Source: Lepidodermella squamata (lineage: Eukaryota > Animalia > Gastrotricha). Taken from it: a DNA stretch of 64,000 bases. Every line of letters starts with the position of its first letter. Positions within the stretch are counted from its first letter, which is position 1. Positions 5,282 through 29,623 of the stretch are shown piece by piece. Made by a program: the position numbers and the translations under genes. The notes beneath the pieces were generated by a model. The model searched no databases. It had not been told where the DNA came from and saw nothing but the letters and a program-made list of their open reading frames with translations. The DNA lies in assembly GCA_047495785.1 (NCBI GenBank), contig JBLDXI010000055.1, positions 1,426,001-1,490,000 on the forward strand. The letters are read 5' to 3'.

Positions 5282-5791
5282 TCAATTGTGATCGTGGCTC
5301 GCGTGAGAAGTATAGATTACAAAACCAAATAGTCCGATGATGACGAGACCGAAAATCATGGCGATAACTGAAACAATTATAGCGATTTCGAATAGTTGCG
5401 AGGAAGCTCCAGACCGTTTCGACCGTCGTGTTGTTGCCAGGGCTATCGCGGGTAGCGACAAGCACCACATGCCACAAAGCAGGGACAGAATTGACATGAC
5501 GATGGCAATCCATCTAGTTCTTTCCATTTTGGCCTTCTCCTCCTCAGGCAGCACGACATCTTTCATGTGGATTACTAAGGGAGGCTGCCGTATTAATGGC
5601 GGATTATTATTTGGTGATTTGATAATGAGTGGATATTTTGGCAAGTCTTCAATGCTGCCTTGTTCGTCGGCGGATGTTGTGGTCACCTGACTCGAAGCGG
5701 AGCTGTTTTCACCAACTGGACTGAAGCTGTCACTGGCTACGTCATTCAGAAGCTGGGCAGATGAATCTTGCTTCTCTAAAACGTTCAACAT
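5282..5791 (-). CDS. CD225/dispanin (IFITM/PRRT-like) membrane protein A
   Basis: S/P-rich N-terminus with LPKY, hydrophobic segment IVMSILSLLCGMWCLSLPAIALA, basic loop, then a C-terminal TM helix. Confidence 0.7.
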   Translation of the reverse strand: MLNVLEKQDSSAQLLNDVASDSFSPVGENSSASSQVTTTSADEQGSIEDLPKYPLIIKSPNNNPPLIRQPPLVIHMKDVVLPEEEKAKMERTRWIAIVMSILSLLCGMWCLSLPAIALATTRRSKRSGASSQLFEIAIIVSVIAMIFGLVIIGLFGFVIYTSHASHDHN

Positions 5792-6479
5792 TATTACGGA
5801 CAAAATGTCTCTGACTCGATATTATAATAATATCTGAACCACATTTTGTTAGAACTTGCATGAAACCCAAGGCCGATAGTGATTAATTATTTATCTGAAA
5901 ATACCCACTGGAGACGACTTGGCCTAACGTTTATATTGGCAAATGTTGCACGCGCCTCGTCCGCTTGCGAACCCCGCCAGTCAATTTAGCGTGCAGGTAC
6001 TGCCGCTTCGGGCCAAGTCTGGTTTTAGGAAATCGATACAGCAAAAAAATCGATTTAATGACGTGCGCGTAATCTTCGATTCGATTTATATAAATCCAAT
6101 CCTCTTGAATTGAAGATGATGCCGTCAAAAAACGTGTAGGATAATCTTGTACACTCTGATTGAGAGAAGATGAATTTTCATGAATTGCGTAGCAGTAAAA
6201 TGCCACTTCCTGCTAGAGGTAAGCAAGATACTAGCCGTGTCTGAGCGAACGTGATGTTTTTTGATAATTGTTCGCTCTTAGAATTTAGAAAAACAACCAT
6301 TTAGCCATAAAGTGCGAATAAACACAACCTTAATGCTATATAGACTTTTTACTGCAGTTAAAAACCACTCAATTTGTAAAAATTATGTTAAATATGCATT
6401 TTTATTTATACCTATCATGTTTGCCTATTTAAAGTTTAAAGCGATAAAGTTATTCCTTCATTAAAAAATTAGCCCAGCA

Positions 6480-7361
6480 ATGGATACGTTCCAGTCCAGT
6501 AAATCCTTGTCATTAAGGTTTCTCGTTTGATTTCAAGAATTTGTTGTCCTAATCATTGGTTATTCACGCAGAACCGAGTCGCCGCCGGCTTATGATAGCT
6601 CGAGTTTTCATGATTCAACGAAAGCTGTCGATCTCACGTCACCGGTTTCTCCCGGGTACCCGGCTAGTTACCTGTCAGTTAACACCAGCAGGGCCCAATA
6701 TTTATTTCACGCTGCGACGTGGAATCCTTTCGATTCCTCATTCAACGGCCGGTCAACCGTGTTAATGCGGCATCCTTACTCAAACAACATCTTCATAGCA
6801 CCGCCTCTTTTCAATAGCCACAGCGGTCTTAGCCTACCGAGCATTGCATCACTGATAGCAAATCGGCCTCCAAGCGCAATATCACCATCGATGATGTATG
6901 AAACAGACGTAGTCAACAGGGCGAACGAGAGGAGGGATCAAAATTTCGTCGTCGTGGAACAGCCGTCGCCTCACACATCCATCGGGCAATCTTTGCATGG
7001 AATTCGATCAGTGGCACTAGGGGCGTCATTGGTATCCCTCATCTTTGGCCCAATATGCCTATCGATTCCAGCTATTTTGTGCGCCTATCGTCGACCACCA
7101 GCGGCTAAGTACTCTACGTACCGAGCTTCTATTATTTTGTCTCTTCTTTCAATAATTTTCGGCGTCATTTGGATAACGGCATTGTCTGTCAAAACAGCGG
7201 CTGGTGTCAATTCCGAGTTGATGGCTTTTAATAACTGCAGTATGTTTGGCTTCGATAACTCAACCACTACAGTGCCGAGCAACTGTACTGAAACAACGAA
7301 TTCGAATGCCACTACAGTGCCGAGCAACTCTATTGAAACTACTACTTCGAATGCATCATAG
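6480..7361 (+). CDS. CD225/dispanin-like protein B with S/T/N-rich C-terminal tail; intron 6518-6571
   Basis: Spliced MDTFQSSKSLSLR|TESPPAYDSS stays in frame into ORF 6759-7361; SLIFGPICLSIPAILCAYRRPP plus a TM helix. Confidence 0.7.
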
Positions 7362-7384
7362 TCCTATGTCAATTTTTCTAAAAC

Positions 7385-7981
7385 TCAAATCTTGTTGAAG
7401 AATTTCAGAACAATAATAACGACGGTTGCATTTGTTAGGATTGAAAGGATTGCTAATGCGATAGCTAAAATATAAGTATTTCGGCTGGCGAGAGGTGGCT
7501 TTCGGCATGCAAAGATCACTGAAGGTATGGCGCAAAAAATCGTTCCCAAGACAACGGAAATAGCAGACAGGGCTATAGCAATATCGCGGCAACGGCTGAA
7601 TTCATGTTGAAAATTATCGCAAGGATTTGTTGCTTTGACTGCCGTAGTTACAATGACATTTTCAGCAGCTAGAATTTGCGAGGTCCCAGGCGAGATGCTA
7701 ACGCCAGTTTCTGGGTGGCAGACCTCTTCACTGAAGTTTAGCTCGGCTCGAAGTGGCTGATGTACGGTCAGGCGGCGAACTGGTAGCACTAGTATTGGTT
7801 CTTCGGCACTCAGAAGGTGCGGTTCATAACGGGATTGCTGGTGATTACTGAAAATGGGGAAAATCTGGAAATACAGATCGATAAGCTCATGAAAGCTGGC
7901 TAACCTTGGATTCGTGACAATTTCTTTTGAGTCGTCGTCCTTATTGCTAATAATCACGGCTGTGTCCGATGTGTCCCCCAT
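7385..7981 (-). CDS. CD225/dispanin-like protein C; probable 57-nt intron 7848-7904
   Basis: AISVVLGTIFCAIPSVIFACRKPPLASRNTYILAIAL is clearly paralogous to A, B, D and E. Confidence 0.68.
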   Translation of the reverse strand: MGDTSDTAVIISNKDDDSKEIVTNPRLASFHELIDLYFQIFPIFSNHQQSRYEPHLLSAEEPILVLPVRRLTVHQPLRAELNFSEEVCHPETGVSISPGTSQILAAENVIVTTAVKATNPCDNFQHEFSRCRDIAIALSAISVVLGTIFCAIPSVIFACRKPPLASRNTYILAIALAILSILTNATVVIIVLKFFNKI

Positions 7982-8281
7982 GATAAAAGAGAGAAATACA
8001 GGAAAAAAAGTAAAAGCTGTAAGGTTGGGTTTATAGCTGTAATATACCTCACTTCGATAAAAACGAGTGTTCTTTATCCATGCTTTACCAAAAGACGGAA
8101 TTCTAAACATATGGTGTGCTAATAAAGTTCCATTTGCGAGATTTGAACAGCTTAGCGACCCATTTTACCAAGTTCTTCATTATTCAGACGGTGCATATGG
8201 TTTTCCTAACTTCCTGCGAATTTTCCTTACAAGGTGATCACTAACTTTAAATTTATAAATATTGAAATCCAACATTGCGCT

Positions 8282-11200
8282 TTATTCGAGAAATTCAAGA
8301 ACCAGAAGGCCTATAAAGCGCCTCCACAAAGGGTATTGATGGCCTAACATGAAAGCAATGTCGAGACAGCCATAGTCAAGTGCAATATCACGTAATGATT
8401 TACCAAAGAAGTCACGCAGGTCAGTTCTAGCGCCGAGAGCGATCAACATTTTCGCAGTTTTAGTTTTACCGTATTCAACTGCCAGCATCACCGGTGTGCA
8501 GCCGAATCTATCTGCGAGATCAAGAAGGGTTCGACCGACCGGCTGCTCGAGGAGAAGCGATATAACCTGTTTTCTACCCTTAGGAACAGCAAACATGAGT
8601 GGAGACTTGCCCTCAATATCGCAAGCATCTATCTGGGCTGCATGTTGAATAAGGCAACCAGCCGTTTCTTCACGGCCGTAAAAGCAAGCATACATAAGCG
8701 GCGTCGCCATCGTAAGATCGCACAAATCAACCTCTGCTCCATGTTCGAGCAGCAATCGAGCGATTTCAGCATTTTCAGACTCACAAAGCTCAGTGTTCTT
8801 AGCGGTAAGAAGAAGGGCGCTTTCGAACTGCGCGTTCTGCGCGTTAACTTCGCAGCCGTTTTCCAACAATAGACGTACCACTGCGACATGGCCATGGCTA
8901 GCAGCGTGCATTAAGGCGGTACAGCAGTCGAAATCTCTAGCATTGATATCAGCACCATTTTCCAACAAAATCTCAACCAAATTATCATAGCCATATCTCG
9001 CTGCATCGATGAGGGGTTTTTGACCAGAAATTCCTCTAATCTCTGTGAAGGCATCTTGCTGTAAGAGGGGCTTAGCAGCTAAACTCCCGATGCGACTCGC
9101 AAGTAGTAGACCGAAAGATATATCGCGAATATTCAATTTCGAATGAATATCAAGTTCGTTGTAGTGATTGAAATTGTAAACTTGCTTCATCAGATCTCTG
9201 GCAATTTCTGATAGGTTTGTAACGGATTCATCGCCAAATACAAGTCGAAGCAGCGGCTCGTTGATTTGGTCGCAAGGTTCAAGTATCGAAGCTTCACCAT
9301 CTTCGATTTTCGATTTGATTTCCTCCATGCACTCCAACTCATCGGCTGTTAAAACTGTCTTGGGCGATAACTCTTCAGGAAAATAGTAATCGTAGTCCCG
9401 TTTTGCAATCCACATGCAATGTTGGATCACAGTCTTATCGCGGTTCGTTTTCAAAGTCAAGTCGCATTTACCTGATTGTAGCATCCAGCTGGCTCTTATT
9501 GTCTCGCCTCGCTCCATCGCTAGCATCATCGCAGTCTGGCCATTATTATTAAACTGATTGAATATAACAGCAGGTACTTTAGGATTCGAGCATAAAGCCC
9601 TTATCACGTAATAACCGTTTGAGACAGCTTTCATTAAAACATTCTCCCCGCAATCATCCGAAACATCGATTCGGCTGAGAAATTCACGGTCGTCTAGGAA
9701 ACATTGCATCAGCTCACTGAGGCCTCCAGCTGCAGCGGCTAATAAAACATTCTCGCAACTAGGTCGACCGGTTTCAACAGACTCGAGGAGCTCCGACCAT
9801 AGCCCTGATGCTTTACAGCGTTTCAGGACAATATCTCTCAGTTTTACGGGGCTTTCCATCAAGTTGTCATCTCCAAACATCAGAGATGCCGCAATGCCCC
9901 GAGCTACTCCTACGACCCCCTCGGTCTCGCCATAATCATCACCATCTTCCAAAAGTTTCTCGAGAATTCGGGCGATAGTCGGAATAGCAATATTCACCCC
10001 CTGCTTGAGTATTAATTTTGATGCAACAAGAGCAGTCAAGGGTGAATAGTGATCATTGGGAAGGAAGAATTCGAGAATCGAGCTTCGAACGCTGATGCAA
10101 TAGCATTCATCGCTGAGAATGTAGTCGATAAAAGTTTTGAAAAGTTGCGTTTTCTGAGTTTTCACAATTTTTTCAAAGCATTCTCGCCCGTATAGCCTCA
10201 AAATCAGTGAGCGACGAATGTCTATTGTTGCAGCGTAATGCGAGAGATTGAAATATTTCCTTGCAAATGGCAGGGCCGTGGCGAAAAATAACTGATGAAT
10301 AGATACATGGCGGCCATTTGTCACTTGAACAAAATTCTTCCTCTCATAATCGTTAACGTGGCCACGTACCTCGGATAAATCGCTGTATCCCCATAGAATC
10401 GCGAGATCTTCGAATTCGACGGTGTTGCCTGGTTCGAAGAGGAGAAAGCCGTAAAATCGCAACTTGGAGAATTCCGATTCATCCCTGAAAACACCTGTCA
10501 ATAGATGCAATATTTTGCGTTCGCCGTCTGACCATTTCGAATTTGACAGATCAACTGCTTCTTCTTCAGAAATAGGGCTCAACAACGTGGCAATAGCATT
10601 ACTGTCGTTTTCTATTTTCGATTTGATGGCCATCGCAGCTAAAGGGGAGCCAGAACACATCCTCGCAAGAGTATCTGTTTTGAGCTCTGATGAAGGGTTC
10701 AAGGTTATTAAATTAAGAATATCTCGGTTTGGTAGAGGAGATATTTTCAACCTCCGGCAGCTATTTGCCAGTTTTAAATCTAGATTTCTACAGATAGCAA
10801 TCACGTGGACGTTCTTACTGAGATGCAACGCTTGGCGCATAATGCAGTCAGAGGTCAAGTTGTCAAGAACCAGTAGAATCTTCGAATTCACCGAGGAAAG
10901 ATCCGAGAGAAATCGCCGAATGTATTTTGCCGAGGAACGTTCTCTATTCAGTTCCTCTACTTTGAGACTGAAGAGTTTACCCAGGCAGGCGTAGAATGAT
11001 AACCTGGATTCAGAGTAGGATCCATGATTGAAATTTGCAGCATTGAGATAAATGACTGTCGCTATGGCACATGATTTCAAAAACTGTTCGTCGAAGACAA
11101 TGGCGTTCAGAACCGTCGAGGTTTTTCCCAAGCCAGAATCACCGTAGAAAACAAGGCACTGCTTAGTTTCACTGGAAGAGCATAACTCTCTGACTTCATC

Positions 11201-11680
11201 TTGCAACTTTGACCAATCCTCCCGCCACGGCAAATCACCGATCTTCGAAAAAGGATAATCACTTTTGATTATAGGACAATCAGCCATTAGCAATGACGAC
11301 TTCTTCATCCATGAAAACTGCCTCGCATCGCAGTATTTAATTTGAACAATGGCCCTTAGAAATAGACCTGGACGAGTGGGGAGGAAATTCTTGCCTAAGA
11401 GATAATCGAGAAGATCTTTCTCCAGACATAAAAGGAATATGAAAAAAGCGTCTTGGGATGGATTTTCAAGTATGGCATCGCATAGGACGTTGACAGACAT
11501 GCTGTTATCGGCGCAATTCTGTTTTAGTCTGTCGAGGAAATCCAAGCCGAAAACATTGATTGCAAGGTCCGTGTCCTCGCGGGTGATTTCGCGTAACATC
11601 GTGCGAGCAACATGCGCGGCGTTGAAACCGTAGGCTCGGCAAGCGATGATGCCCTCCTTAATTTCAACGTTTTCGACCAT
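8282..11680 (-). CDS. STAND/NB-ARC NTPase with CARD-like N-terminus and C-terminal ankyrin repeats (NLR/APAF1-like), intronless, 1132 aa
   Basis: Walker A GDSGLGKTS, Walker B ILLVLDNL, sensor-1-like VIAICRN, GxP motif CSGSPLAA, winged-helix LAILWG...IHQLF; multiple ankyrin repeats such as TALMHAASHGHVAVVRLLLENGCEVN; helical N-terminal ~95 aa with LCDAILENPSQDAFFIFLLCLEK. Confidence 0.85.
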   Translation of the reverse strand: MVENVEIKEGIIACRAYGFNAAHVARTMLREITREDTDLAINVFGLDFLDRLKQNCADNSMSVNVLCDAILENPSQDAFFIFLLCLEKDLLDYLLGKNFLPTRPGLFLRAIVQIKYCDARQFSWMKKSSLLMADCPIIKSDYPFSKIGDLPWREDWSKLQDEVRELCSSSETKQCLVFYGDSGLGKTSTVLNAIVFDEQFLKSCAIATVIYLNAANFNHGSYSESRLSFYACLGKLFSLKVEELNRERSSAKYIRRFLSDLSSVNSKILLVLDNLTSDCIMRQALHLSKNVHVIAICRNLDLKLANSCRRLKISPLPNRDILNLITLNPSSELKTDTLARMCSGSPLAAMAIKSKIENDSNAIATLLSPISEEEAVDLSNSKWSDGERKILHLLTGVFRDESEFSKLRFYGFLLFEPGNTVEFEDLAILWGYSDLSEVRGHVNDYERKNFVQVTNGRHVSIHQLFFATALPFARKYFNLSHYAATIDIRRSLILRLYGRECFEKIVKTQKTQLFKTFIDYILSDECYCISVRSSILEFFLPNDHYSPLTALVASKLILKQGVNIAIPTIARILEKLLEDGDDYGETEGVVGVARGIAASLMFGDDNLMESPVKLRDIVLKRCKASGLWSELLESVETGRPSCENVLLAAAAGGLSELMQCFLDDREFLSRIDVSDDCGENVLMKAVSNGYYVIRALCSNPKVPAVIFNQFNNNGQTAMMLAMERGETIRASWMLQSGKCDLTLKTNRDKTVIQHCMWIAKRDYDYYFPEELSPKTVLTADELECMEEIKSKIEDGEASILEPCDQINEPLLRLVFGDESVTNLSEIARDLMKQVYNFNHYNELDIHSKLNIRDISFGLLLASRIGSLAAKPLLQQDAFTEIRGISGQKPLIDAARYGYDNLVEILLENGADINARDFDCCTALMHAASHGHVAVVRLLLENGCEVNAQNAQFESALLLTAKNTELCESENAEIARLLLEHGAEVDLCDLTMATPLMYACFYGREETAGCLIQHAAQIDACDIEGKSPLMFAVPKGRKQVISLLLEQPVGRTLLDLADRFGCTPVMLAVEYGKTKTAKMLIALGARTDLRDFFGKSLRDIALDYGCLDIAFMLGHQYPLWRRFIGLLVLEFLE

Positions 11681-11926: not shown

Positions 11927-13001
11927 TTAACTATGTGGAGAATCCTTTTGACATACAGGTCTCATCAGCTCACTGTGGTCAAACCGAGCTGTCGTGAAAA
12001 TCTGTACAGCTGACTTTCTAAAAGCTGGATTCGAAACGAAATAGACAATAAAATTTCCGAAATGTTCGACGAGGCGAAATGATACGGGAATCAGCGAAAG
12101 CTTGTACAATGCCTGATTACTAAGTGTTGATCCCCATATATAACCGGACGTTATAGGGTTGAATAGAACTGTGGGAATCTCCCCAATTAGCGCGCAGAAA
12201 ACGCCAGCTATCAAAGCTATTGTCAGCTTTCGGTCGTGGCGAGGCCGACCGGGCAATTTCTGCGGGTCAAGGTGGCAAATCATTCGAATAAGAAAACAGT
12301 TGAGTGCCAACAGCAAGGCGACTGCGCCTATATAAAACCTAAATATAAGGTGGATTTTGGATTGAAATTTCTTAATCACCAGCATGAAAGACGACTAGCC
12401 GCCCAATCGAGTAGACTTGGAACCAACGGCTCTTCCACCGCGGAACTCGGCATCCGCGTTCGTCGAAGGTCCAAGCGAAGAGGCGAGGGATGCTTAGCAG
12501 TGTAAATATTAGGCAGATCCCGATCGCGACAATTACGGCAATTTTGCGGGCAGCGTTTGTATCAACGAAACCTCGCAGCCTCCTGACAAACAAAACCCGG
12601 TGCATGCTCATCGCAATGACCAGTTGTGTTGACAGCGCCGTGGTGCCGTTGTAGAGTGGCCACAACAGGAAAGTATTTAGCCATCGGCCCCGCTCAGTCG
12701 CCGAATATTCAACCACGGAGAAAAATAGTACGCCTTGTGACGACATGAGTAAAAGCTGAACGAACGCAAGGGCTGATAGGTAGATGTAAGTTGGCGATTT
12801 TAAGGTTGGCGACTTCATCGACTGATCGAACAGCAGCACGACAAAGGTGAGTAAATGCAAAAAGGTGCCGATAGTGCAAAGAAAAGGGATAACACCACCG
12901 TAATACAGTTTTTCTTCACTTGAAAGTCCTCTGGCAAACACTTCGATGCAAGGTGGCCCAGTTGATGACGATACATTGGCTAGCGGCTGCGACATTGCCA
13001 T
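11927..13001 (-). CDS. Rhodopsin-like (class A) GPCR, peptide-receptor-like orphan; 2 exons, intron approx. 12330-12380
   Basis: Seven hydrophobic segments; SPTYIYLSALA (TM2), MSMHR at the DRY position, LSIPRLF (TM4), GEIP (TM6), NFIVYFVSNPAFRK (TM7/helix 8); splice FHAG|AVALL joins the two ORFs. Confidence 0.85.
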
Positions 13002-13303: not shown

Positions 13304-14053
13304 TTATTCTGCACGTCGTCTCAATCGAGAAGAGATAGCTTTGATCAATCCAAAAGATGGAGGGTTCAAATTGAAATAATTACGATATCCAGGGAAATAG
13401 CGAAGAGTTGCATCAACAAAATGAAGGCAATAGATAAAACACAGTGAATACGTAGCATAGTAAAGCGATGCCCCAGGATAAGCTATGACATATATCACAC
13501 TTTTAGTTAAATACTGCAAAGCTATAATTATGAAGTTCCACAGGAATGTTTCGAACAATGAAAAAGTATAGCTAGCAAAGGCAACAGCGATAACGACGCA
13601 AAGGGAAGCGTTGAGAACTTTTGTCGGGAAAACGATCGCGTTGTACAATCGGTTCGGCAGTTTATCCAGAATGGCAGTCAAGACTCGCTGACTGACAGCC
13701 ATTATCAGAAGGGTGACTATGCTCAGGTAGAGCAAATGCATAGTGAAAGCCGAAAATGTGTTCCAAATAATGACAGGATAGTAGATGATAGCGTCGACTA
13801 ACGGCCTGAGGTAATCGATCAGCATGACGATCATTGAGAAGATAAAGTTGGCTAACATCTCGACCAAAACAAATGTTGAACAGGTTGTAGCACCAAGGCA
13901 TATAGCAAAATGCATAGCGTTCTGTTTCATCGTTGGCGCAGCTTCGGTTTCATTCGGAAGCAAGCAGTTCGCTGGCAGGTAGGTTTCTTCCTCATCTTCG
14001 CCAATAATTGTCACCCGCCTGTTGTTGTTGCTTAGCCTTCTGAGCATCGGCAT
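13304..14053 (-). CDS. Orphan multi-pass membrane protein with a two-fold internal repeat
   Basis: ~250-aa ORF from MPMLRR with about 5-6 hydrophobic segments; a 50-nt GT-AG intron lies just upstream of the ATG; no family recognised. Confidence 0.65.
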   Translation of the reverse strand: MPMLRRLSNNNRRVTIIGEDEEETYLPANCLLPNETEAAPTMKQNAMHFAICLGATTCSTFVLVEMLANFIFSMIVMLIDYLRPLVDAIIYYPVIIWNTFSAFTMHLLYLSIVTLLIMAVSQRVLTAILDKLPNRLYNAIVFPTKVLNASLCVVIAVAFASYTFSLFETFLWNFIIIALQYLTKSVIYVIAYPGASLYYATYSLCFIYCLHFVDATLRYFPGYRNYFNLNPPSFGLIKAISSRLRRRAE

Positions 14054-14282
14054 TTTCGAAACTCTGGGTGTGGGGATAAATAAAAGTAACAATAATGTCG
14101 AGCTGCCTAATACCTCACACGGGACACACGACAAGTCATAAAAATTATGCATGATTTATGTCCTCATTTTTTCCGTTCCCTGATGATATATTTATTTCGC
14201 ATATACAACAGCACGTCGGTGACATGGTAATAAAAAACAGCACGAAGCACGTGTCTCGATTGATTATACTCAGTCAGTCGAG

Positions 14283-15681
14283 TTAAACGATGGAATGCCT
14301 GTGGCCGAATCTCGGCATTATTGACGGCGTACTCAAATTGTTGACCGGTTGAACAGAGATCATGGCAGCGAGCGGCGGCAATGGGGATCGCGTTGTTGGA
14401 GGGTTGTATTGCGATGTCCCTATTGTCAGAGGCAGGTCCAGCTTTAAATTCGGCAGCCATGGTATCCTCAACCCAATCTGCAAATTAAATACTTAGGTTC
14501 GATCATTCGCAAATTTTTTACGCTATTTCTACTCGACTGAGTGCTGGTTACTTCAGAGATCTATCATCAGCCGAAGTAACATGTGTTCTACTACGCTATG
14601 GGAAAGAAGTGAAAGGTGCACTAAGACCTGTATGAAGTAGCTGACTTCTATTATTTCGCAACACAGAGATGGTATGTCAAGCGTAGGCAACCGAAATCGC
14701 ATGCCTTTCCACTGAGTGTAGCCATTTTCGCCAATCAGTGCCGTCAACGCTGCTTCATCTTCTGAGTCGCCCAGGGGCAGCAGCTCCCATTCGTTGACAT
14801 AGATGTCTGTTTCACCTAGAATAAACGCTAAGCTACGAAAAAACTATCGATCTTCGTACTCACCAAAGCATCGATGTGTCACTTCCCTCATCAATTTAAT
14901 GAATGGCCTCGCGGACCTTGCTGATCGATTGAAAAATTTAGCACTGATTCCTATCACGTCACCTGAAAGAAATGTCCCTTTTAAGTCTGATGCATTAAGT
15001 AATTTACTGATTTACCTGAAATGTAACCTGATCTGTCTGTTTGAGCTTCGACCGACAGAGGTCCAGACTCGCAGCAAAAACAACACGAAGTTTTGGTTTT
15101 GCTTGATTTGACGATGGCTCGAAAAAGCGGTTGGTTTATGTCGACAATCTGCTCGACGTAGATGCGCCTTTTCGCCGATTTTCGCTGCGCAGGTAACAAC
15201 CCTTCGTCAGGTCCAAACAGTTTGAGGGTGTATCGGATCGAACCGTTTTTTGTCGGGTGCTCGCTTTCATACGATGGTAAGATGCTGTTTCACGAAGGTG
15301 AGCACTAGATCAGGGCTAGAGAAAACAACTCACTTCATAGGCAGTTTGAATGAGAAAGGAAGCTGGTGAATTCCAGGTGGAATAGAGTCTATTGAGCATA
15401 AAAATTCATCGATTAACGATACTGAAGAAGAAATACTGACTTTGTGGCGTAGTGAGATTTTGCACCATCTCAGCATTTGGCTTCAACGAGCTGAAGAAAG
15501 TTTTCGAGTGGCAGCCAGTCCTTCGCCGAATTCGAACTTTAGCCAGAGATTTGAGAGTCAGCTCGACGTAGAAAATGTGTTGCCCGCCTTCGACAACGTA
15601 GACCTCGCAATAGCCGGTAACAACTTCGCCGATAAAGTACGTGATCTTTGGCAATTTAATGTCCATCGCCTGGATGACCAT
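14283..15681 (-). CDS. Alpha-arrestin (ARRDC family) 1; 6 exons; no PPxY
   Basis: Spliced: YFIGEVVTGYCEV, PGIHQLPFSFKLP, LPSYE..NGSIRY, SCCFCCESGPLSVEAQTDRSGY, EVSYFIQ|IGLRIPW..LPLTIGT. Confidence 0.88.
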
Positions 15682-15825
15682 TTCCCCTCAGCAGAAAGAC
15701 TTAAAAATCCTAAAATAAAATTACCGAGAGACGAATCACTAAACAATAATTATTCAAGACATAAACAATGATATTCTGCAATTTTACAATGTTAAAACTG
15801 CAGTATTAGGAAACAGCAGGAGCCG

Positions 15826-17141
15826 TCACTTTGAATTGTGAGTGGCTGAGTAAGGAGGAGGCTCCGCTGTCGTACCATTTGATGTCGAAGCCCCGTTTGC
15901 AGGTGTGCCCGGCTGCACCATCACGGTTGGCGGCTTTCCCTGAGGGCCACTTGTAAAATGCGGGATGGTTGCAATAGTGACTGGGAGGCTGATTTCAGCA
16001 TTATTCGACCAAGCCACCTCGAGGCCAATCTGAAGTTAAATCAGCTGATCAAATTCGAAAATCAAATGAAAAATCACCTTGACAGTGTAGGTAACCTCGA
16101 TAAGTTCGTAGTAAATTGATGGAGATTGAAGGTCCCCTGGTAGCTCGAACTTCAGACTGTTCCATTCGATACTTCCACCTTGCCCGATGGAACCCAGATC
16201 TTCACCTCCAACGACTTGTAATTTCCAAAAATTTGTAAACGAATCCGATTGTGCTTATGATAAACGCTTAAAATTCGGGCCTTTCTAAAGTTTTTCTGCA
16301 TTTCATACCTTTTGCTCTGTAATGGACCTTTCTAAACAGTTTTACGTAAGGGTGAACAACTTTAGAAGAACCGTTGAAAAATTTAGCAGTTATCAGCAGT
16401 CGCTCCTCTGTGAAAGGCAAAAACAGAGGTTAGTGAGATTAATTGACCTAGTTTAATTGCCACTTACTTATAGCAAAAGCAGCTCGATCCAATTTTGCCT
16501 CCACGCTGATGGGTTGCCCCGCCCCGCAGCACGTTGAAACGGGGGTTTCAGCGAAACCGGGTACCTCAGCTTGGTATGCTGGTAGGTTAGCGTCAATTAG
16601 TTCCCATAACTGAAACTGTTTCTCATGAGGATGATCCCTATCATAAGGATTGACAGCGACTAAGGAGTAGCGTATACTACCGTGCTCGCTTTCAGGCGGA
16701 GGCTCGTAAGATGAAGGTAACCTAAAAGGTCAAATAGATCCAATCTATATGTTGATTGTCATAGAGATATTTTTTTACACGATTGGTAGTTGGAATGCAA
16801 ACGGCAATTGATTCATGCCAAGCTCAAGGACCCCGTCGGGTGTTGACAGGCGCTGGGTAGCTGCTGGAAAAATGAGTCGACTTTCAGTGACCGAAGTCCG
16901 CTCGTCTTCTTCATGATTCTGATTGCCATCGCGGTAACACACAACCTGAAATGTTGATGAGAATGAGGTTAAGATTCTAGGATGAAAATTCACTGACCAT
17001 TGTCTGAGACATGCCCTTCATCGTCAGCTCGATGTGAGGTGGGAGAGGCCGCCCGGGCAGGACTTCAATTTCGCAAATACCGGTAAGCAACTCGCCAGCG
17101 AGAAAGCGCCTCTTTGATAATTTGATTTCGCAATGAGCCAT
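15826..17141 (-). CDS. Alpha-arrestin 2; 6 exons; C-terminal PPPY
   Basis: MAHCEIKLSKRRFLAGELLTGICEIEV, LPFAFQLP, LPSSYE..HGSIRY, EVTYTVK|IGLEVAW..LPVTIATIP; all introns GT-AG. Confidence 0.85.
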
Positions 17142-18592: not shown

Positions 18593-19800
18593 TTAAATGT
18601 GTTGAATATCTTCCTGGCCAGGTTGCGAAGTGATGACCGCCCAGTCAGCTGTTCCTTTCTTGACCTTGAACGGCACCGTGCCGATAGTGACGGGGAACGT
18701 GATTTGCAAGCTGTGCGCCCATCGAACTTCGACGCCGATTTCGACGCTGTACTTCACCGTGATGAGATCGTGCGTGATCGACGGGGCGCTGATAGCCTGC
18801 GGCAGCCTGAAGCGTGTTCGATTCCACTGAATGGTGCCGCCGCATCCGACCCAACTGTTGACGCGATCGCCTTCTTTCCTAGGTCGAAGCTTCCACAGTT
18901 TAGCGTCAACTTCAACCTCATCCTTTGCGTGATGCTCAATCGTTCGTCCGAACTTCACGAATGGCCGCATCGCCTTCGAGCTGTTATTTGTGAATTTCGC
19001 TGTGATGACCAGTGGCTCCTCTAAAATGCCATTGGTTATAACTTCAATGAGAATCTGGGAATTTAATTTACCAAGGTAATAGGAACTTCGCTCCAGCTGG
19101 GCTTCGATTGTAATAGATCCATCTTCAGCCCCGCAACCCCTACGTCCACATGACCTACTTTAAATTTGAGCATTTCGCAATCATTGAATTTCTCACCAAA
19201 ATGGATAAATCGTTTCCACTTTCTTTTCAGCCAATGGCGCGCAGTAAATCGGCAAATTTGTGTCGATAACTTGCTGAACGCGAACAAACTTTTCAATGCA
19301 CCGCTTCGGATCTGTCGGGTCGCTGACAACTAGCGAATATCGAATCCAGCCGTAATCTCCTTTTCTTATCAACTCAGACTCGTAAGATGACGGAATGCTA
19401 GGGAATGAAATTCGAAATATAGAAAAGATCCCCATCTCCAGAAGTAAGCTTACTCAGGAGGCAAATAAGCGCTGAACGGGATTTGGTAGCTTCCGGGCAC
19501 TAGCATTCCTGAAACAGGAAAAAATGAAACCATCTGAAATTCGAAAAAGCTGAACATCCAACCTTGAGGAACCGTCAAATGTTGGGTTTTCTCCGGGAAA
19601 AGATCAGCGTTGTCCTGGACAAGGTCGCGGGCCTTACGGCTGCCAATAACTATAGCTTGAATGCGGCCTTTCAGGGTCATATCCACATGCGGGATGCCCT
19701 GGCGATCAGCGCCGATTTCAACCTTGCAAATGCCAGTTATCGACTCGCCAGCGTAAAACTTTGGCTTGGTCAGCTCGAGAGACAGCTTCGAAACAGCCAT
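18593..19800 (-). CDS. Alpha-arrestin 3; 5 exons; short tail without PPxY
   Basis: FYAGESITGICKV, PGSYQIPFSAYLP, PSSYE..GWIRY, ITVKYSVEIGV, FPVTIGTVP. Confidence 0.88.
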
Positions 19801-20249
19801 TACTTTTATGCGATATGAAATGAAGAGACCTGTGAAGTCTAATTTCCAGTCTGCGTTTTTTTGCGCGATGATATGTGTGCTGCGGCGATGAATTGTTGAT
19901 GGCGCATCGTCTTCAAAACATTTCCTCAGCTAGATCGATAAGTCGCAGGCATTCGAGCCTTTTATCGAAATTTGATACAGCTGGCGTGATTAAAAAGTGC
20001 AGTAACTGCACTCATAGCCAGTTGGTTTATCGATTTCGCGACGTGTTTCGGCACTAGTTGTTGCTGGAAAGAAGTGCGCGTTTAACGCGGTAACACGACA
20101 TCACTAGGGCCCGTATTGGGTGACAGCTCTTTGAATTCGAGAAAAAGATGCAGTGTTCCATTCATATTTTATTTTCAAGCATGGCCGCAAATCGGAAATC
20201 TCAATTTTCATAATTTTTTCTTTATACCTACGATAATTATTGTCAACGT

Positions 20250-21729
20250 TCAAAGTTTAACTTCAGTCAGCGGGGGTGGTTGCGCTGAATAAGAGACAGC
20301 GGCCACGCCAGGGTTCATTGAAACTTGACTAGGCTGCGGCGGCATTGCGGTGTTATTATTGTTATTATTGTCGTCTGGATACGGCAAAATGGCACGTTCG
20401 TTGGCGAACATTGCAGCAAAGTAACTGGGCGGAGGAACGCTGTAATTTATGACGTCATTAGATGGCGCTGGCAGAGGTGGCGCCGAGGCGATGGAGTCGC
20501 CCGATTGCTTGCCAGATCCACCCCACGGGTAGGCGCCACCTGACGGTTGGTAACCCGGGGGCAGGCTGGATCCGCTCGGCATGGGAGGCATGCCGGCAGG
20601 TTGTTGTGCCATCACAACCGGCTCATCGCGGAAAGGGACAGTTCCGATGACAACTGGCAGATAAACCTCTAAATCAAACGCCCACGGGATGTCGAGTCCG
20701 ACCTGTATAGAGATAGAGGAAAGTAGGTGTCTGATGTTTAAAAAAAGCCGTTTAGGAGAGGAAACTCACTTCCACGTGGTAGGTAACCTCGATATTTCCG
20801 CAGCTTATTGATGGCAAAAGCGCGTCAGGTAGGCGAAATTGCACGCCTTTCCATTCAGCGCTTCCGCCTTCGGCTATTTCGGTCCGAATTTCGGCGCTAT
20901 TAACCAGGGGCGCCAGTTTCCACGACTCAATCGTCGACCGTGTCTTGCCCTGGGCGTGAAACCTGCGAGTTTGAACAAGTTTCGCGTAAGGCTTGACTGT
21001 CTTTGATGACTCATTTTTAAAAGTAGCAGTCACCGTCACGACATCATCTATAAATAAAGCAATAAAAATAAGGATTTTTACGTAAATTATCCTAATAATT
21101 ACTTGGACAGTAAGCTGCGCGATCAGTTTTTGCGTCGATAAACAGCGGACCCGATGCGCAACACCAGCAACAGTTCGTCTTAGTGTCAGTTCCAGCGACA
21201 GAGAATCGGTACTGCGGTAAATTAGGGTCGATCCACTGGATGACCTTGATGTCTTTGACCGCCTTTGGTTTGAACAGCGAAACGAACCAATTTGCAGGCG
21301 CTTGAGCCGTCAATCTATACCGAACATATCCATAACTTCCTTCCATGGCTGTCGGCAATCTGTGAATAGAATGTGTTACTAAGCTAAGATCAAATCCCCG
21401 TCCTATTACCCAGCAGGCAGTTGGAAGGCAAATGGAATCTGATGAATTCCGCTCGGAATTTTGCCAGCCGTTGTTGAGAGGTTCTGCTCCGTGCAGAAGA
21501 AGTCTACGTTGGAAGTGTATGATACGGTTGTAGTGTGGCGATGTTTCCCGCTGCCGTGGCTTCGCGACTCTGTCCAGTGAACATGAGCGGCGCCATGAAA
21601 TTGAACAACAATGCAAGGAACTTCAGAGCCTTCGGTAATTTCTACCGAACAGACACCCGAGACAACCTCGCCGGCGTAGAACAACTCGCGCCCGCCATCT
21701 AAGAGAAGAAGAATGCTCTTGATTCCCAT
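20250..21729 (-). CDS. Alpha-arrestin 4; P-rich tail with PPGY and PPSY
   Basis: FYAGEVVSGVCSV, FHGAAHVHW, GIHQIPFAFQLP, LPTAMEGSYGYVRY, CCWCCASGP, VGLDIPWAFDLEVYLPVVIGTVP. Confidence 0.92.
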
Positions 21730-22104
21730 AAAAACTGGTTCGAGTCTAGTTCTATATAGTATGGACTCCTAATCTGAAATATACACTTGAGGTGTTGTTG
21801 ATAGAGAGGCCTGGTCTGCCTTATAAGCAACGCCGTAGTGAATCACTTGGACCCACGATATGTTTCATAACCTACGTCAGTATTTTATCGCTTGGAAAAA
21901 TACTAACTCAATGCAAATATTATATTGTGTAAATACGCGTAGTAATAATATCGTAGAGGCGGCGCTTAGTCTGTGTACTGATAAGAAGGCGCTAATTTCG
22001 GAATATATGATATGTGAGAGTCCAATCACTTTTTTCTCACGAGCGATTCTTTCATGCGTGCCTGGAAAATCGGTGTACACTGATTCAAAGTGAAAATTTT
22101 ATTC

Positions 22105-23683
22105 TCATAATCTCGTCTCAGGAGGTCTAGCCTGCAAATGAGAGGGCTTCTCTGGAAGAGGAGGAGGTATTAAGCCATAAGTTGGGGTTTGATGAACAGT
22201 CTGTTGAGGATGTGATGAATTGTCTTGAAAGTGAGGATGCATATTGAGGTTCTGAGTTGGCGCGACCGGTTGATAGGACTGTTGCCGTTGTTGTTGCTGA
22301 TGACGATGATTAGCTGCCGCCGCATTCTCAGCATCAGCATCAACTTTGTTAGGGTTATCCTCAGCTTCATCCGCCTCTGTTAATACTGCAGTGTCTTTCG
22401 CGAAAACTGCGTTAAAATAGTTGGGTGGCTGATACATAGGTTGAGCCTGAACTTGGCCGAAATCTTGAGGTAACGGCGGTGGAGACGCAAAACGCACGCT
22501 CTGACTCGATTGTGGACCCGACCCAGTCCATTGGTGAGGAGGCGCCCCAGAGTTGGGCTGTTGCTGAACAGCGACCATCTCGCCGCGGAAAGGTATCGTG
22601 CCCATCACAACAGGCAAATGCACTGCAAGATCCAGCGCCCACGGAATATCGAGCCCAACCTCAAGTTCATACGACAGTGTGATGTTCTGGCAGTTGACGG
22701 AAGGTAGCGCATCGTTGGGTAATCGGAACGCGATTCCATTCCAAACCGTGCATCCACCTTGACCTATCATTTCGCATGCGCCATCATCGCAAACCGGTTG
22801 CAGCTTCCATTCGTCGTCACTGTCACGCTCGTGAGTTTCGCCGTCACGCTCAGCCCGATACACTCGTTTTTGGTTGAGTTTAACATACGGTCTAACTTCC
22901 TTGTTCGAGTCGTTGCGAAATTTTGCGGTTATAATCACGGTTTCGTCTAAATATTCAATATAAATTTTCCACGACCTTTTGCTATAAATGTTCCCTACTT
23001 GGGCAATAAGCTGCTCTATCACTTTTGGCCTCAATGGAGAGAGGCCCCGATGCACAGCAACAACAGCAAGTTGTTTTCGTATCACTCCCAGCGACGGGGA
23101 ATCGATATTGAGGCAAGTTTGTATCGATGATTTGCAGAACTTTGATATCTTCGATAGCTTTTGGGGCGTACAGTTGCTGAAACCAGGTACCCTCCGGCAC
23201 TTCGGCTTCGAACCGATACCTTACGTAGCCGTAGACTCCTTCCATTGAAGTTGGCAACCTGAATAACACCATTTACCCATGTTCATTAACATGCTTCATC
23301 GTAATTACGAGTTTGGTAATTGAAAGGAAAACGGGAGCTGGTGAAATCCGGCTGGCAGATAACCTGTGTTAAATTATAAGTTATATTCAGTATTTTTTGT
23401 TAATTGATATCATACCATATTTTCCGACAAAACTTTCTTCGAATCGAAAAAAGTTGACATGTGATTTGTAGGTCACGAGATACGTCACGCGGGTCCCAGC
23501 AATATGGCTTCGGCGCTGCTCTTTCCATGTTGCATGGGCGCTGCCATGAAACGATAGTTGAATGCCCGGTACGTCATGGTTGTCGTCGATAATTTCCACC
23601 TCGACCGCTCCGCTCACCGATTCGCCGGCGTAATACACTGTTCGGTTGCTTGCTAAACGTATTCCGACGTGCTTTAAGCCCAT
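22105..23683 (-). CDS. Alpha-arrestin 5; P/Q-rich tail with PPNY
   Basis: YYAGESVSGAV, LPTSMEGVYGYVRY, CCCCCASGP, VGLDIPWALDLAVHLPVVMGTIP; closest paralogue of arrestin 4. Confidence 0.92.
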
Positions 23684-24905: not shown

Positions 24906-25598
24906 TCAGCAGACGTAATAGCTGGCTCGATAGCCATACTGAACCTGAACGCAATTAGCTTGCAAATGGCGTTTAGCCGCAATTTCGAGGCCGATGATAA
25001 GACAGAAGAAAAGAATGCCGAAAATCATGGCAATTGATGCCAATATGTACGCGCCACGATACGTTGACCTGGTCGCATCTGGCGGCTTTCGCAGCGCCAT
25101 TATAAGCGCTGGTATGCCGCAGCACCAAGCGCCGAGAAATAGCGAAAATATCGAACAGATCAAAGCCCCGGTTCTGTAATGCTCGAGTTCCGGTTCCAGC
25201 GGTTCTTCAACTTCGTGCTGGTACATCAGCATGACGGGTGGTTGAAGGGGCGGGGCGTTGTAGATGGTTTGCCCAGGTGCAGCTGGAGGAGGGGCGTCCC
25301 TAAATTTAGCTGAGTCATAGCCGACTTGCATAGGGCCCCCTACCATCAGAGGCTGGGTGGCTGAACTTGAGCCATTGATGACGTAGGGCGGTGGTGGTCC
25401 GACTGTCACCGTGCCATCAGGGTACTGGTACTGTACCGGAACAGCTCCTGGTGGCGGGGCGTGGTAGTAAGCCTGTGGGCTTGGAACCCCGACCCTGATG
25501 TGATAGGAGAAATCAAGTTTTCATGGCTCAAATGGGGCTACTATAGAAGCTTACGGATCGTTTGGTATTGGACTTTTCTCGTTGCCCGACGAAGCCAT
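24906..25598 (-). CDS. CD225/dispanin-like protein D (proline-rich, PPPY); 2 exons
   Basis: MASSGNEKSPIPNDP|VGVPSPQAYYHAPPPG...GPPPPY; CSIFSLFLGAWCCGIPALIMA plus a TM helix. Confidence 0.78.
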
Positions 25599-25791: not shown

Positions 25792-26382
25792 TCAGCCAGA
25801 AATTGGGGATGTAGTGTTGTTCATGGGCGGATTGCTGTTGGCAGCGTTCATTTGAGCCGTAACAGCATTTCCCAGTAATTTTGTCATCTGTAACGTGACA
25901 AGGACATTGGCGACAACAATGATGACCACTGCAGCGAGGCCGATGAGCAAGCCAATTGATGACAAGATTATCGAAGTGCGATATTGCCGCGTTCTTCGAT
26001 CTCCATGCGTAGCTGACGGCTTTTTTATTGCCAGGACGATTGCAGGTATTGCGCAGCACCAAGCGCCGCAGAACAGCGACAGGAGAGATAACACCAAAGC
26101 ACTGTGGCGACACTTTTCTTGCTCGGGATCGAATACGTAATTGCTATCAATTTGTGCGACAGGATCATGATATACGAGGATAACAGCCGGTTTAGGATGA
26201 CGCGGCTCATCTTGAATCGGAGGTGAATTTGTGAATACCGTGCTGTATGATGGTGGCGGAAAATCTAGCTGGCTGATTCTGTATACGAGAAAATATCAAG
26301 CTAATTTTAATTGAGGTTAAAGCCCTAATCCTTACTGTATGCCATTAATATCGGCAATTTGTCGCTGGTCTCTCCCGATCAT
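25792..26382 (-). CDS. CD225/dispanin-like protein E (PPSY); 2 exons
   Basis: MIGRDQRQIADINGIQ|ISQLDFPPPSY; LSLLSLFCGAWCCAIPAIVLAIKKP plus a TM helix. Confidence 0.78.
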
Positions 26383-27035
26383 TTGCAAATATCGAACTAG
26401 CAAGGTGTTTAGTTGATTTCAGGTTGCTTCAATTTAACACGTTTTTTCAGCGAAATTTTTTCAGGATGACGCCTTGGTTGTTCCAGCACGCGGAAAAATC
26501 GATCGCCCCTCACTTTTATTATGCCGTGTGCGTGCAGTAAATAATTCAACACGCGATTGTGATGCCTTTTCGTGCGCGCTGATCATGATGATTCATCCAT
26601 CATCGTTTGCCCTCCGCACATTCTTCGCTGAATATTCATTTGATATATCGCGTTCACATTTCCTCCAAGTATTTGACACTGCGCTAAAGACGAGACGAAG
26701 TGGGGAAAATTATGAAGAACACGTCAATGAAATAATATGATCAACTTTGATCCGCACGCTTCAAATGTCCAATTTTAGCGTTCTTTGCTATTTTTCTGAT
26801 CGCCTCGAGCTCCAGAAATTCGTCCCACTTTTCCGAGGCTCATCTGTTTTCTAGTTTAAAAGCTAGTAAAATTGAAGTCTGATTAATCAACAACCAAGTT
26901 GAGCTTTATTAAAATCTGGTGTTTATAATGTTCAAATTGCCGTTGTATTAGAGTGATACAATAATAATGATAAAAGGCGATGAAACAGTAAAAGAAAGCC
27001 CCGAGCTTCGTATATAATCGTACATAGCAGTATTC

Positions 27036-27954
27036 CTATATGTTCAAACCATTCTGCGGCAGCTTCTGAGGAACTCTAAACGTTGAAAAGATGAAAAAAC
27101 ATTTTTGACAGACTAATTGGAATCCGTTTATATATTATTTTGAATTAAAACTGTAAAATGAATGAATAATGGCTAAAAATACTAACCGTTTGGCAACCGA
27201 AGGAATTGACATCGGGCATTTCTTTGATTCTGCCATTTCAGCCCGCAAACTAGGCGATAGAGCCACGACAATCGACGCCGGTAATACCTCAGACGTAATT
27301 CGAACTTTCCACGCCATATTCATCTGGAATATATAACAATTTAAGATGGATGGACGGAAAATTGCGACTGACTTCGAGGAAACGAGTCGTGAATGTACCG
27401 ACAGCACGGCGCCAGGCGAGCAGCGAGAAAAACAGGAACAAAATGTTCATGGCCGACAGGTAAACAGCGGCGCTGGGTACCTTGTCGTTGTGTATAATTT
27501 TCGAGTAGTTGCGCACGATCAAACTGACTGAGTAAGCGACTAGCATTGAGCATGTGGCGAATACGGACAAGTAGAGAGGGTCGATAAGGCTGAAACTGGG
27601 CAGTTGCCATTTGCCTAGCGGCTTCAACGCCTTGCCAACGCCCTTGAAATCATCGTGGCAGATCTCACATTGCACGAAGCTGCCGAAGCCGTGCTCGACG
27701 TCGGCCGGCCCGCTCAGGCCCGATTGCTTCTCGGCGTTGATGCGAATCCAGCGTTGTAGGCATTTACGGTGGAAAAAACCGATCGTGCCCTTGCACTGGC
27801 AAAATGCGTACAACTCGCCGTTCGCGGCGTAGCAAATTCGGCAAACGGGCGTTGGCGATGAGGAGCATCGTGAATCGTCCGGGGAATGTGATTGCGACTG
27901 CTCGCCGGTCAACAGCATCGCCTCTACGCTTCTCGGTGTCGACCTGCCACTCAT
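27036..27954 (-). CDS. MARCH-family RING-CH membrane E3 ubiquitin ligase 1 (last exon uncertain: stop at 27135 or 27036)
   Basis: CRIC...FCQCKGTIGFFHRKCLQRWI...CEIC (C4HC3), two TM helices, WRR...MNMAWKV after splicing. Confidence 0.88.
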
Positions 27955-28284
27955 TTTTCAACTAAAAATCCTAAATTAAAAAGGTAAATTTGACAGAATA
28001 AGTAATTTTAATCATAAAATTTGCTGCGTCTGGGTTTAAAAATTCTGAAAGTTTGGCAACAAATTCAAACGTGGTGGTGAGTGATTTTACAGGTGTTTCA
28101 ATGTAATCGACTCAAACAGCTGGGAATGTTAAAGAATATAGTTATACTCGATTGATTTGCGACATCAAAAATCTTTGTTTCTTTAATAAAGTTTGAATCA
28201 CATTAATAAATCGCTTGATATACTGCTAACAAATTTTAAAATAATATAATAAACCGGGAATGAATGAAGAAATGACGGTTCAAA

Positions 28285-29623
28285 TTAGACTTCAGTCGTA
28301 AGGCCGAGTGATCTGAAACGAGACGATGCGTTATCCATCGAGCTGTTGAGCGCGGCATTGTCGGTGTTTGATGATCGGCCGGGGATCAACATTGTAGTAG
28401 AGTCGCCACTAGTTTCGCCGGCTAACATGGCCGCCCCTTCCTCAGGCATAGGTGAAACCTGCTTCTTGGCAGGCTTCAGAATCGGACGGCGGTGAGGAGA
28501 TGGCGCCAAGCTGGAAATTTTGAAAAATAAAATTAATTTGTTCAACCTGGTCCTAATACGAGTCGTTTCACAGTGGAATCACGACACCTTAACCAAACAG
28601 CACCCAGAAGCGAGGAATTTCATTTAATTTAAAAACTGAATTTCAAGAAAAAAAGTTCGATCATTTGCTATATCTGCCAGTAGATCAGTACGATCGACAA
28701 AAGATTATCTAGTACCGTTTTATCGGCGTCATAGGATCAGCGTCTGCCAATAAGTCATCATCCTTATCGTCCATCATCGACTTGTTTGTGCTGTTAATCG
28801 CATTTATCAACTTGGTTTCTAGAACATCGTCAGTGACCCGCACACGCCAAGTTTTGTTCGTCTATAAGCGTTGGAAAATTCCGTTAATAAATTGAATAAT
28901 TTGCCAACTTCCTTACATCGAAAAATCGTCTGCAAACTCCTGAGACAGCTCGGCGCCACAGAACGACGAGTGATGCGATGCAGGAGATGTTCAGCGGGAT
29001 GTAAATGGCAATGACAATGAGAGCAAAAACTCGCTCTGAGTTGACAGGCCCGTCTCCGAAAATTACTTCGCGCGAACGCCACGCTTTATAAGTAATCCAA
29101 GGAATCGAGTACATGACGATGATCGAACAGCACACGAACAGCGCCAGGTAGAGCTTGTCGAGAACGCCCATCCTCGGACAGCGCCACTAAAAAATAATTT
29201 CATAGTGAGGTTCGAACTTGACAATAACGAGATTTCTACCTTTCGCACGGGCTTGAACGACCAGTCGGTGCCGCCAAACGGCGACTGGCAAATTTCGCAC
29301 TTGTTAGCCTTCAACTTGGAGTCGATCCATCGCTTCAGGCACTCTTTGTGCACGTATCCAACGCTGCCTTTGCACTTGCAAAACGCGTACAACACCCCGC
29401 ACGTCGAGTAACAGATACGGCAGACGATAGGGCTGACGCTGATTTGATGAGCGGCAGTTCCGCCAGCCGTCAGCGACGACATGCTACAGTCAAGGCTCGA
29501 ATCGCGACTATGTGGACAGGTGCCACTGGCGTCGTGGTCAGGCGACGCAATCGGAGGCAGGTTTTGGCTCTTCGTCTGGCTGTCCGATGCCGTTTCGCTG
29601 ACAACTTCAGTTTCGAACGGCAT
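28285..29623 (-). CDS. MARCH-family RING-CH membrane E3 ligase 2; 4 exons; C-terminal PDZ-type motif TTEV
   Basis: CRIC..FCKCKGSVGYVHKECLKRWI..CEIC, KPVRK|W, two TM helices, WRR..TNKTWRV. Confidence 0.9.

Follow-up and report, generated by a model that had tools for sequence, protein, structure and literature searches.

Alpha-arrestin, dispanin-like and MARCH-type genes clustered in Lepidodermella squamata, with partly conserved gene order in a diverged relative

Genes at the locus

We analysed a 64-kb window of the genome of the gastrotrich Lepidodermella squamata (GenBank assembly GCA_047495785.1, contig JBLDXI010000055.1, positions 1,426,001 to 1,490,000 of the forward strand; coordinates below are those of the window). 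The gene cluster of interest is a 24-kb stretch inside it that carries five alpha-arrestin genes, five genes for small dispanin-like proteins with two transmembrane (TM) helices and two genes for MARCH-type RING-CH ligases. Among them lie a G protein-coupled receptor (GPCR) gene, a P-loop/ankyrin gene and an orphan multi-TM gene. An earlier note, made from the letters of this DNA alone, had proposed that these non-homologous genes form a functional cluster for endolysosomal membrane control or antiviral defence.

The window has a GC content of ~44%, GT-AG introns of ~50 nt and many single-exon genes, which indicates a compact animal genome; the published L. squamata assembly has a GC content of 43% (PMC11660948). 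Splice junctions of the arrestin models and of dispanin-like D were read by hand. Database searches were run on single exons, and spliced models were joined for computed comparisons only. Pfam cut-offs were 21.6 bits for RINGv, 27.1 for CD225 and 22.2 for 7TM_GPCR_Srw. Local hidden Markov models (HMMs) for the arrestin and dispanin-like families were built from the window paralogues and run over all 64 kb. The relative used for comparison is a compact animal represented by ENA metagenome contigs that code for dispanin-like relatives, and seven distinct loci were inspected in it.

The alpha-arrestin array

14283..15681, minus strand: alpha-arrestin 1 (arr1), 350 aa, six exons, CCFCC, without PPxY; manual model, local HMM match on all exons.
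15826..17141, minus strand: alpha-arrestin 2 (arr2), 347 aa, six exons, PPPY tail; manual model, local HMM match.
18593..19800, minus strand: alpha-arrestin 3 (arr3), 369 aa, three exons, without PPxY and without a Cys cluster; Arrestin_C 41.9 bits.
20250..21729, minus strand: alpha-arrestin 4 (arr4), 435 aa, four exons, CCWCC, PPGY and PPSY; Arrestin_N 58.4 bits, Arrestin_C 47 bits.
22105..23683, minus strand: alpha-arrestin 5 (arr5), 474 aa, four exons, CCCCC, PPNY; Arrestin_N 42.7 bits, Arrestin_C 46.4 bits.

The five arrestin genes stand in tandem on the minus strand (14283-23683), and all are intact and spliced. Every intron is GT-AG, most are 42-67 nt long (one is 144 nt), and the five models contain no frameshift or internal stop. 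Arrestin_N and/or Arrestin_C exceeded the Pfam threshold on exons of arr3, arr4 and arr5, with scores lowered because exons were searched singly. Only the paralogue HMM recognised arr1 and arr2; it matches every exon of all five genes and found no further arrestin copy or fragment in the rest of the window.

In the PDB, arrestin-exon profiles matched TXNIP, ARRDC3 and C. elegans ARRD only; the beta and visual arrestin chains, despite their number there, were not matched by the two profiles used. The last arr5 exon returned nothing in a word-index protein search, and an arr5 exon searched against the PDB with phmmer gave nothing useful. On these sequence comparisons we identify the window arrestins as alpha (ARRDC/TXNIP) type. 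The paralogues are 32-51% identical, share one strand and have intron positions in common, and the array is therefore of tandem origin; at such identities the duplications must be old. As an array of tandem alpha-arrestin genes the locus is a clean one. Inside the cluster, the gaps at 17200-18590 and 23700-24900 (1.2-1.4 kb) lack both a convincing open reading frame (ORF) and any remnant of an arrestin or dispanin; they might serve regulation or host non-coding transcripts.

MARCH-type ligases

27289..27954, minus strand: MARCH-type ligase 1 (MARCH1), 221 aa, C4HC3 at residues 38-99, CLQRW, two hydrophobic helices; RINGv 42.6 bits.
28884..29623, minus strand: MARCH-type ligase 2 (MARCH2), two exons, C4HC3 at residues 68-112, two TM helices; RINGv 43.0 bits.

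In the translations, both proteins show the full C4HC3 pattern with the CLxxW tryptophan, followed by two hydrophobic stretches. The MARCH2 exons correspond to ORFs at 29063-29623, which carries RINGv, and 28884-29171. Neither protein contains PPxY. Judged by sequence, MARCH1 and MARCH2 are MARCH-type RING-CH membrane ligases.

A divergent family of two-TM proteins

5282..5821, minus strand: dispanin-like A, two TM helices, SIPA-type core, LPKY only; local HMM 103 bits; provisional 5' end.
6531..7361, plus strand: dispanin-like B, with PPAY encoded in the open frame before its first ATG; provisional start codon.
7385..8110, minus strand: dispanin-like C, without PPxY; best window match (49 bits) of P0126, a protein encoded on contig L008 of the relative.
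24906..25598, minus strand: dispanin-like D, exon 1 at 25598-25555 and exon 2 at 25494-24906; PPPY, WCC; CD225 21.5 bits (sub-threshold).
25792..26345, minus strand: dispanin-like E, PPSY, WCC, sole copy with a G-D pair in the loop; provisional 5' exon.

All five are paralogous, with identities of 25-36% overall and of 30-38% in the core, and the local HMM counts exactly five of them in the window. Their common core reads R..A...S..SL..G.WC.(S)IPA...A.RKPP.A...TYR..I.LS. The first exon of D is a 44-nt mini-exon (MASSGNEKSPIPND...) followed by a 60-nt intron. An ORF-based reading skips this exon, and the PPPY of D would then fall outside the protein; with the exon recognised, the motif lies inside it.

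The placement of the family relative to CD225 (PF04505) is less clear-cut. D scored 21.5 bits, below the Pfam cut-off, and A, B, C and E gave no match. A word-index protein search with D found nothing, the family profile returned only noise from the PDB, and in a language-model Atlas D fell nearest to CD225 clusters (0.83-0.85), a proximity that the tool itself rates as a lead only. A family profile search of 1.84 billion representatives recovered 54 relatives at E<=1e-3, and those looked up came mostly from ENA metagenome assemblies. CD225 matched three of 49 scanned relatives (best E 4.7e-8) and none of the ten best; DUF4190 matched seven of the 49.

Features described for dispanins are two TM helices, the first with a double Cys, a loop that holds G-D and A-x6-A motifs and, in nearly all metazoan members, an intron in that loop (PMC3282796). 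In alignments, the window family has this two-TM topology, its helices joined by a short, basic loop on the intracellular side. Of the five proteins, only D and E have the double Cys and only E has G-D; A-x6-A occurs in B, C and D. The loop intron is absent from all five genes, in which helix 1, loop and helix 2 lie in a single uninterrupted ORF. From these sequence features we propose a divergent dispanin-like "SIPA-motif" family, a possible member of CD225. The locus thus adds a divergent dispanin-like family with a conserved PPxY.

Two observations concern the family in the relative. The 653-aa protein P0121 (L014:781-2742) carries the SIPA core at its extreme C-terminus after ~580 residues without a Pfam match, and is a fused or long-N-terminus dispanin-like member. 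Contig L001 encodes three dispanin-like proteins within 8 kb, at 2344-2976 (minus strand), 6833-7060 (plus) and 9998-10540 (plus), among housekeeping genes; the family is therefore both dispersed and locally duplicated in the relative too.

Other genes within the cluster

8282..11680, minus strand: P-loop NTPase and ankyrin-repeat protein, single exon, 1132 aa; Ank_2 155 bits.
11927..13001, minus strand: rhodopsin-type GPCR, two exons; exon 1 matches 7TM_GPCR_Srw at 25.3 bits and 7tm_1 at 18 bits.
13304..14152, minus strand: orphan multi-TM gene, 282 aa, directly downstream of arr1 after a 130-nt gap.

The P-loop/ankyrin protein features Walker A (GDSGLGKT, residue 180), Walker B (LLVLDN, 269) and GSPLA (344). 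Pfam matched its P-loop region to AAA_22, ATPase_2, AAA_16 and NPHP3_N, all below threshold, and found no NACHT, NB-ARC or leucine-rich repeat (LRR) domain in the protein. The P-loop half had no match in the PDB (phmmer) or PADLOC, and its single-sequence AlphaFold2 model (pLDDT 34) was too poor for a fold search. Read from its sequence, the gene would be STAND-like by architecture only and not an NLR in the strict sense. Exon 2 of the GPCR, which has no Pfam match, encodes TM5-7 and an NPxxF-like motif as read in translation; a DRY motif is absent from the receptor, with MHR in its place.

The orphan multi-TM protein matches no Pfam or Atlas family, and its AlphaFold2 model (pTM 0.33) was likewise too poor for a fold search. 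It is 31% identical (E 5e-35) to a 250-aa ORF of the relative (L008:8110-8862, plus strand) that also lies directly downstream of a PPxY-less arrestin. Arrestin and orphan gene are head-to-tail in both species, 130 nt apart in the window and 340 nt apart in L008. A profile scan of JGI metagenome contigs found no more relatives of the orphan protein, whose family is known here from two sequences only; an arrestin exon profile scanned over the same kind of contigs came back blank.

The gene assignments of the earlier note thus hold for the five alpha-arrestins, the two MARCH ligases and the GPCR. Its five dispanins stand as five two-TM paralogues but not as CD225 proteins by threshold, and its NLR-like receptor gives way to an ankyrin protein with sub-threshold P-loop matches. 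The 282-aa multi-TM gene was omitted from that note.

PPxY motifs in two families

Strict PPxY motifs are found in six proteins: arr2 (PPPY), arr4 (PPGY and PPSY), arr5 (PPNY), B (PPAY), D (PPPY) and E (PPSY). The motif is absent from C, arr1 and arr3, and from A, which has LPKY only and which had been listed earlier, together with these six, as sharing a PPxY or LPxY motif. In B, the PPAY precedes the first in-frame ATG and counts only with a predicted 5' exon. Across ten regions (the tails of the five arrestins and the N-terminal regions of the five dispanin-like proteins), PPxY occurs in six, compared with 0.89 expected from composition-preserving shuffles, an excess of about seven-fold.

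The relative provides a second line of evidence. Protein E and its counterpart P0127 are 33% identical, and the PPSY of E is aligned with a PPTY in P0127 even though synonymous sites are saturated. Conversely, arr1 and C, which lack the motif, correspond in L008 to proteins that lack it as well. This alignment, together with the matching absences, argues that the motif is functional. Docking of NEDD4-type ligases on PPxY tails is a reasonable inference from the sequences because the motif is real, above chance and conserved at an aligned position in an orthologue. Such PPxY-based docking of NEDD4-family ligases is established for ARRDC proteins and for IFITM3.

Cys clusters were the other feature suggested to connect the families. 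They are present (CCFCC in arr1, CCWCC in arr4, CCCCC in arr5, WCC in D and E), but they are intrinsic to each family. The arrestin CCxCC aligns with the CCWCC of C. elegans ARRD and is therefore a family trait with no link to the other families.

Gene order in the diverged relative

At the MARCH end of the cluster, the comparison rests on L013, an 8.2-kb contig that is complete as assembled. It encodes, on one strand, two RINGv proteins, the dispanin-like P0127 and an arrestin, in the order of MARCH2, MARCH1, E/D and arr5 in the window. By exon-level BLAST, all 8.2 kb are collinear with window positions 35752-22105. The MARCH1 orthologue (L013:4746-5327) is 38% identical; for MARCH2 (orthologue L013:3265-4044), identity is 61% over the RING exon and 82% over the TM exon. 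An attempt to extend L013 past its arrestin found only short contigs. The collinear block also takes in genes that belong to none of the three families:

30613..35755, plus strand: non-family neighbours, collinear in the relative too (low-complexity gene, orphan gene X, Death-domain gene).
32192-34317, plus strand: orphan gene X, collinear in L013.
34385-35755, plus strand: Death-domain gene, two Death stretches, 60 bits; counterpart at L013:2-160 (minus strand).

Because the block includes the low-complexity gene, gene X and the Death-domain gene, the conservation of order extends beyond the three families.

At the other end, the 20-kb stretch of L008/L009 encodes a complete alpha-arrestin, the homologue of the orphan TM protein, a small tail-anchored ORF and the dispanin-like P0126. 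Arrestin, orphan and dispanin-like genes lie on one strand of L008, as in the window, and these three are all that the stretch and the window have in common. The 1.1 kb between orphan gene and dispanin-like gene in L008 contains neither the GPCR nor the P-loop gene, both of which the earlier note had listed at this locus. For 16 kb or more upstream of the L008 arrestin, the genes are of lectin, Sushi and C2 type, with no further arrestins or MARCH genes. The best BLAST match of this arrestin is arr4, and a tree does not settle its orthology to arr1. Elsewhere in the relative, five of the seven dispanin loci have unrelated neighbours, with no arrestin or RINGv gene nearby.

Orthologous pairs show synonymous differences (pS) of 0.78-0.96, which is saturated, and nonsynonymous differences (pN) of 0.12-0.47. 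With pS saturated and pN far lower, the two species must be deeply diverged and the genes under purifying selection. We conclude from these sequence comparisons that the shared gene order is old, going back to an ancestor of both species, and was not put together recently. The microsynteny that the earlier note had proposed to look for is thus found at both ends of the cluster, but unrelated genes share in it and most dispanin loci of the relative are unlinked.

Promoter words and surroundings

A search for shared upstream words found no cluster-specific promoter k-mer. The one shared word, AAATCGAT, has 16 sites in the window compared with 5.7 expected (e.g., at 6030, 11812, 13172, 20029, 23926, 26496, 33239 and 56620). 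It includes the ATCGAT core of DRE (TATCGATA) and often lies <300 nt upstream of start codons. We rejected it as a cluster-specific word since this DRE-like element is window-wide and is also found upstream of CDC5L, well outside the cluster; it is probably a general core-promoter element of the genome.

53896-56370, minus strand: CDC5L, single exon, 824 aa; best protein matches ~57% identical, vertebrate.
44540-45541, plus strand: GH99 endo-mannosidase-like gene, an ordinary neighbour.
50035-50991, minus strand: trypsin-like protease, an ordinary neighbour.

These three genes mark the surroundings of the cluster as a normal gene-dense region. A search of the window for tRNAs and Rfam families gave no match. 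At 680-1819 (plus strand) lies an intronless gene for a SAM-dependent carboxyl methyltransferase (Methyltransf_7/SABATH, 160 bits), here in an animal genome.

Interpretation of the cluster

On balance, and with confidence only slightly better than even, we read the cluster as an old neighbourhood of membrane-protein-turnover genes that has been enlarged by local tandem duplication. The five ARRDC/TXNIP-type arrestins would act as cargo adaptors, with the C-terminal PPxY motifs of arr2, arr4 and arr5 docking on the WW domains of NEDD4-family HECT ligases. Through an N-terminal cytosolic PPxY, B, D and E would probably be NEDD4 clients or adaptors, as are IFITM3 and the NDFIP proteins, and MARCH1 and MARCH2 would ubiquitinate membrane proteins directly. 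The three families would then work in parallel in one pathway, presumably of membrane trafficking, and not on each other, an arrangement that may not depend on the genes being neighbours. Outside the conserved core stand the GPCR and the P-loop/ankyrin gene, which this lineage may have gained later or the relative may have lost.

Several observations weigh against so plain a reading. Two of the seven dispanin loci of the relative have an arrestin within 2.5 kb, far above what a random gene pair would give, and in both species a gap of just 130-340 nt separates arrestin and orphan TM gene; some coupling by selection or regulation is possible. The locus of A's best relative (L004, encoding P0123, 47% identical over 79 aa) is not collinear with the window, so order is not kept everywhere. 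The analogy of the two-TM family with IFITM3 is also weak, since the family is only a putative member of CD225.

An arrestin/dispanin-like/MARCH cluster that acts as a functional unit is unproven. In its fullest form this idea holds that the cluster is a selected, co-regulated module that remodels endolysosomal or surface membranes, perhaps against viruses, with the P-loop/ankyrin receptor as its sensor; we regard it as unlikely. Order and strand are indeed kept at both cluster ends in a relative with saturated synonymous sites, the PPxY motif is conserved, an arrestin adjoins those two dispanin loci, and the Death-domain gene stands beside the block in both species. Yet the conserved block also includes unrelated orphan genes, neither the putative sensor nor the GPCR occurs in the matching interval of the relative, and what precedes the L008 arrestin is lectin, Sushi and C2 genes, not arrestins or MARCH genes. 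Most dispanin loci of the relative lie elsewhere without an arrestin or RINGv gene, the locus of A's best relative is not collinear, and the one enriched promoter word, AAATCGAT, is spread over the whole window. No test tied any of the families to immunity, and the antiviral or innate-immune role proposed in the earlier note has no support from any analysis that we ran.

At the opposite extreme, arrays of three abundant families could have come to lie side by side by pure coincidence, with PPxY a by-product of Pro/Tyr-rich tails and no pathway in common. Tandem duplication does explain each local expansion, but composition-matched shuffles fall far short of the PPxY count, the motif is aligned between orthologues, and the arrangement predates the split from a deeply diverged species; we consider coincidence distinctly improbable. 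Least probable of all is a smaller unit in which arr1 and the orphan multi-TM gene form a dedicated adaptor-partner pair, possibly co-transcribed, with the rest incidental: the close head-to-tail spacing, the lack of PPxY in both arrestins and the similarity of the orphan proteins speak for it, but it has one external example only, the L008 arrestin matches arr4 better than arr1, and the orphan has no known fold or family.

The old neighbourhood enlarged by duplication is therefore the reading we carry forward, and the value of the locus as it stands is descriptive, including as a worked example of seeming "functional clustering" for which tandem duplication within an inherited syntenic block accounts in large part. 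A bolder proposal would join two of the alternatives: selection keeps the neighbourhood together as a membrane-remodelling module in deeply diverged meiofaunal animals, with arr1 and the orphan TM protein as a dedicated adaptor-partner pair. We give it little credence, although among the sub-leads at this locus the closely spaced arrestin and orphan TM genes are the most interesting. Few alpha-arrestin cargoes are known in animals, and we know of no description of a hard-wired alpha-arrestin/cargo gene pair among them. If the linkage were functional, the locus would name candidate partners (PPxY-bearing two-TM proteins, the orphan multi-TM protein and the MARCH ligases) among ~15 small genes.

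Comparison with known systems

The P-loop/ankyrin protein resembles STAND NTPases, such as the NB-ARC proteins APAF-1 and CED-4 and the NLRs, in its N-terminal helical region, its P-loop with Walker A/B and GxPLA-like motifs, and its C-terminal repeats. It differs from NLRs, APAF-1 and CED-4 in that no NB-ARC or NACHT domain is detectable with Pfam and the repeats are ankyrin repeats rather than LRR or WD40.

The two-TM proteins share with CD225/dispanin proteins (IFITM, PRRT2, TRARG1) a small size, two hydrophobic helices and a short basic loop, and D and E share the double Cys of helix 1. A proline-rich N-terminus with PPxY is a likeness to IFITM3 in particular. Unlike CD225/dispanin proteins, they are built on the core R-x2-A-x3-S-x2-S-x3-G-x-W-C-x-S-I-P-A, have no intron in the loop and all remain below the CD225 threshold. 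Like B, D and E, the NEDD4-family adaptors NDFIP1 and NDFIP2 are small multi-pass membrane proteins with PPxY in an N-terminus on the cytosolic side; they have three TM helices and several PPxY motifs, and the window proteins have no sequence relationship to them.

As in MARCH and viral K3-type RING-CH E3 ligases, both window ligases combine an N-terminal C4HC3 that includes the CLxxW tryptophan with two subsequent TM helices; MARCH1 departs from these E3s in a 24-residue insertion before the last Cys pair.

Finally, the window arrestins differ from ARRDC, TXNIP and ARRD proteins in forming five copies in one tandem array and in the short, PPxY-less tails of arr1 and arr3. They have the Arrestin_N and Arrestin_C fold domains in common with mammalian ARRDC1-4/TXNIP and C. 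elegans ARRD, three of the five carry the C-terminal PPxY, and the CCWCC at the start of the C-domain of C. elegans ARRD (PDB 7usy) has the same form as their CCxCC.

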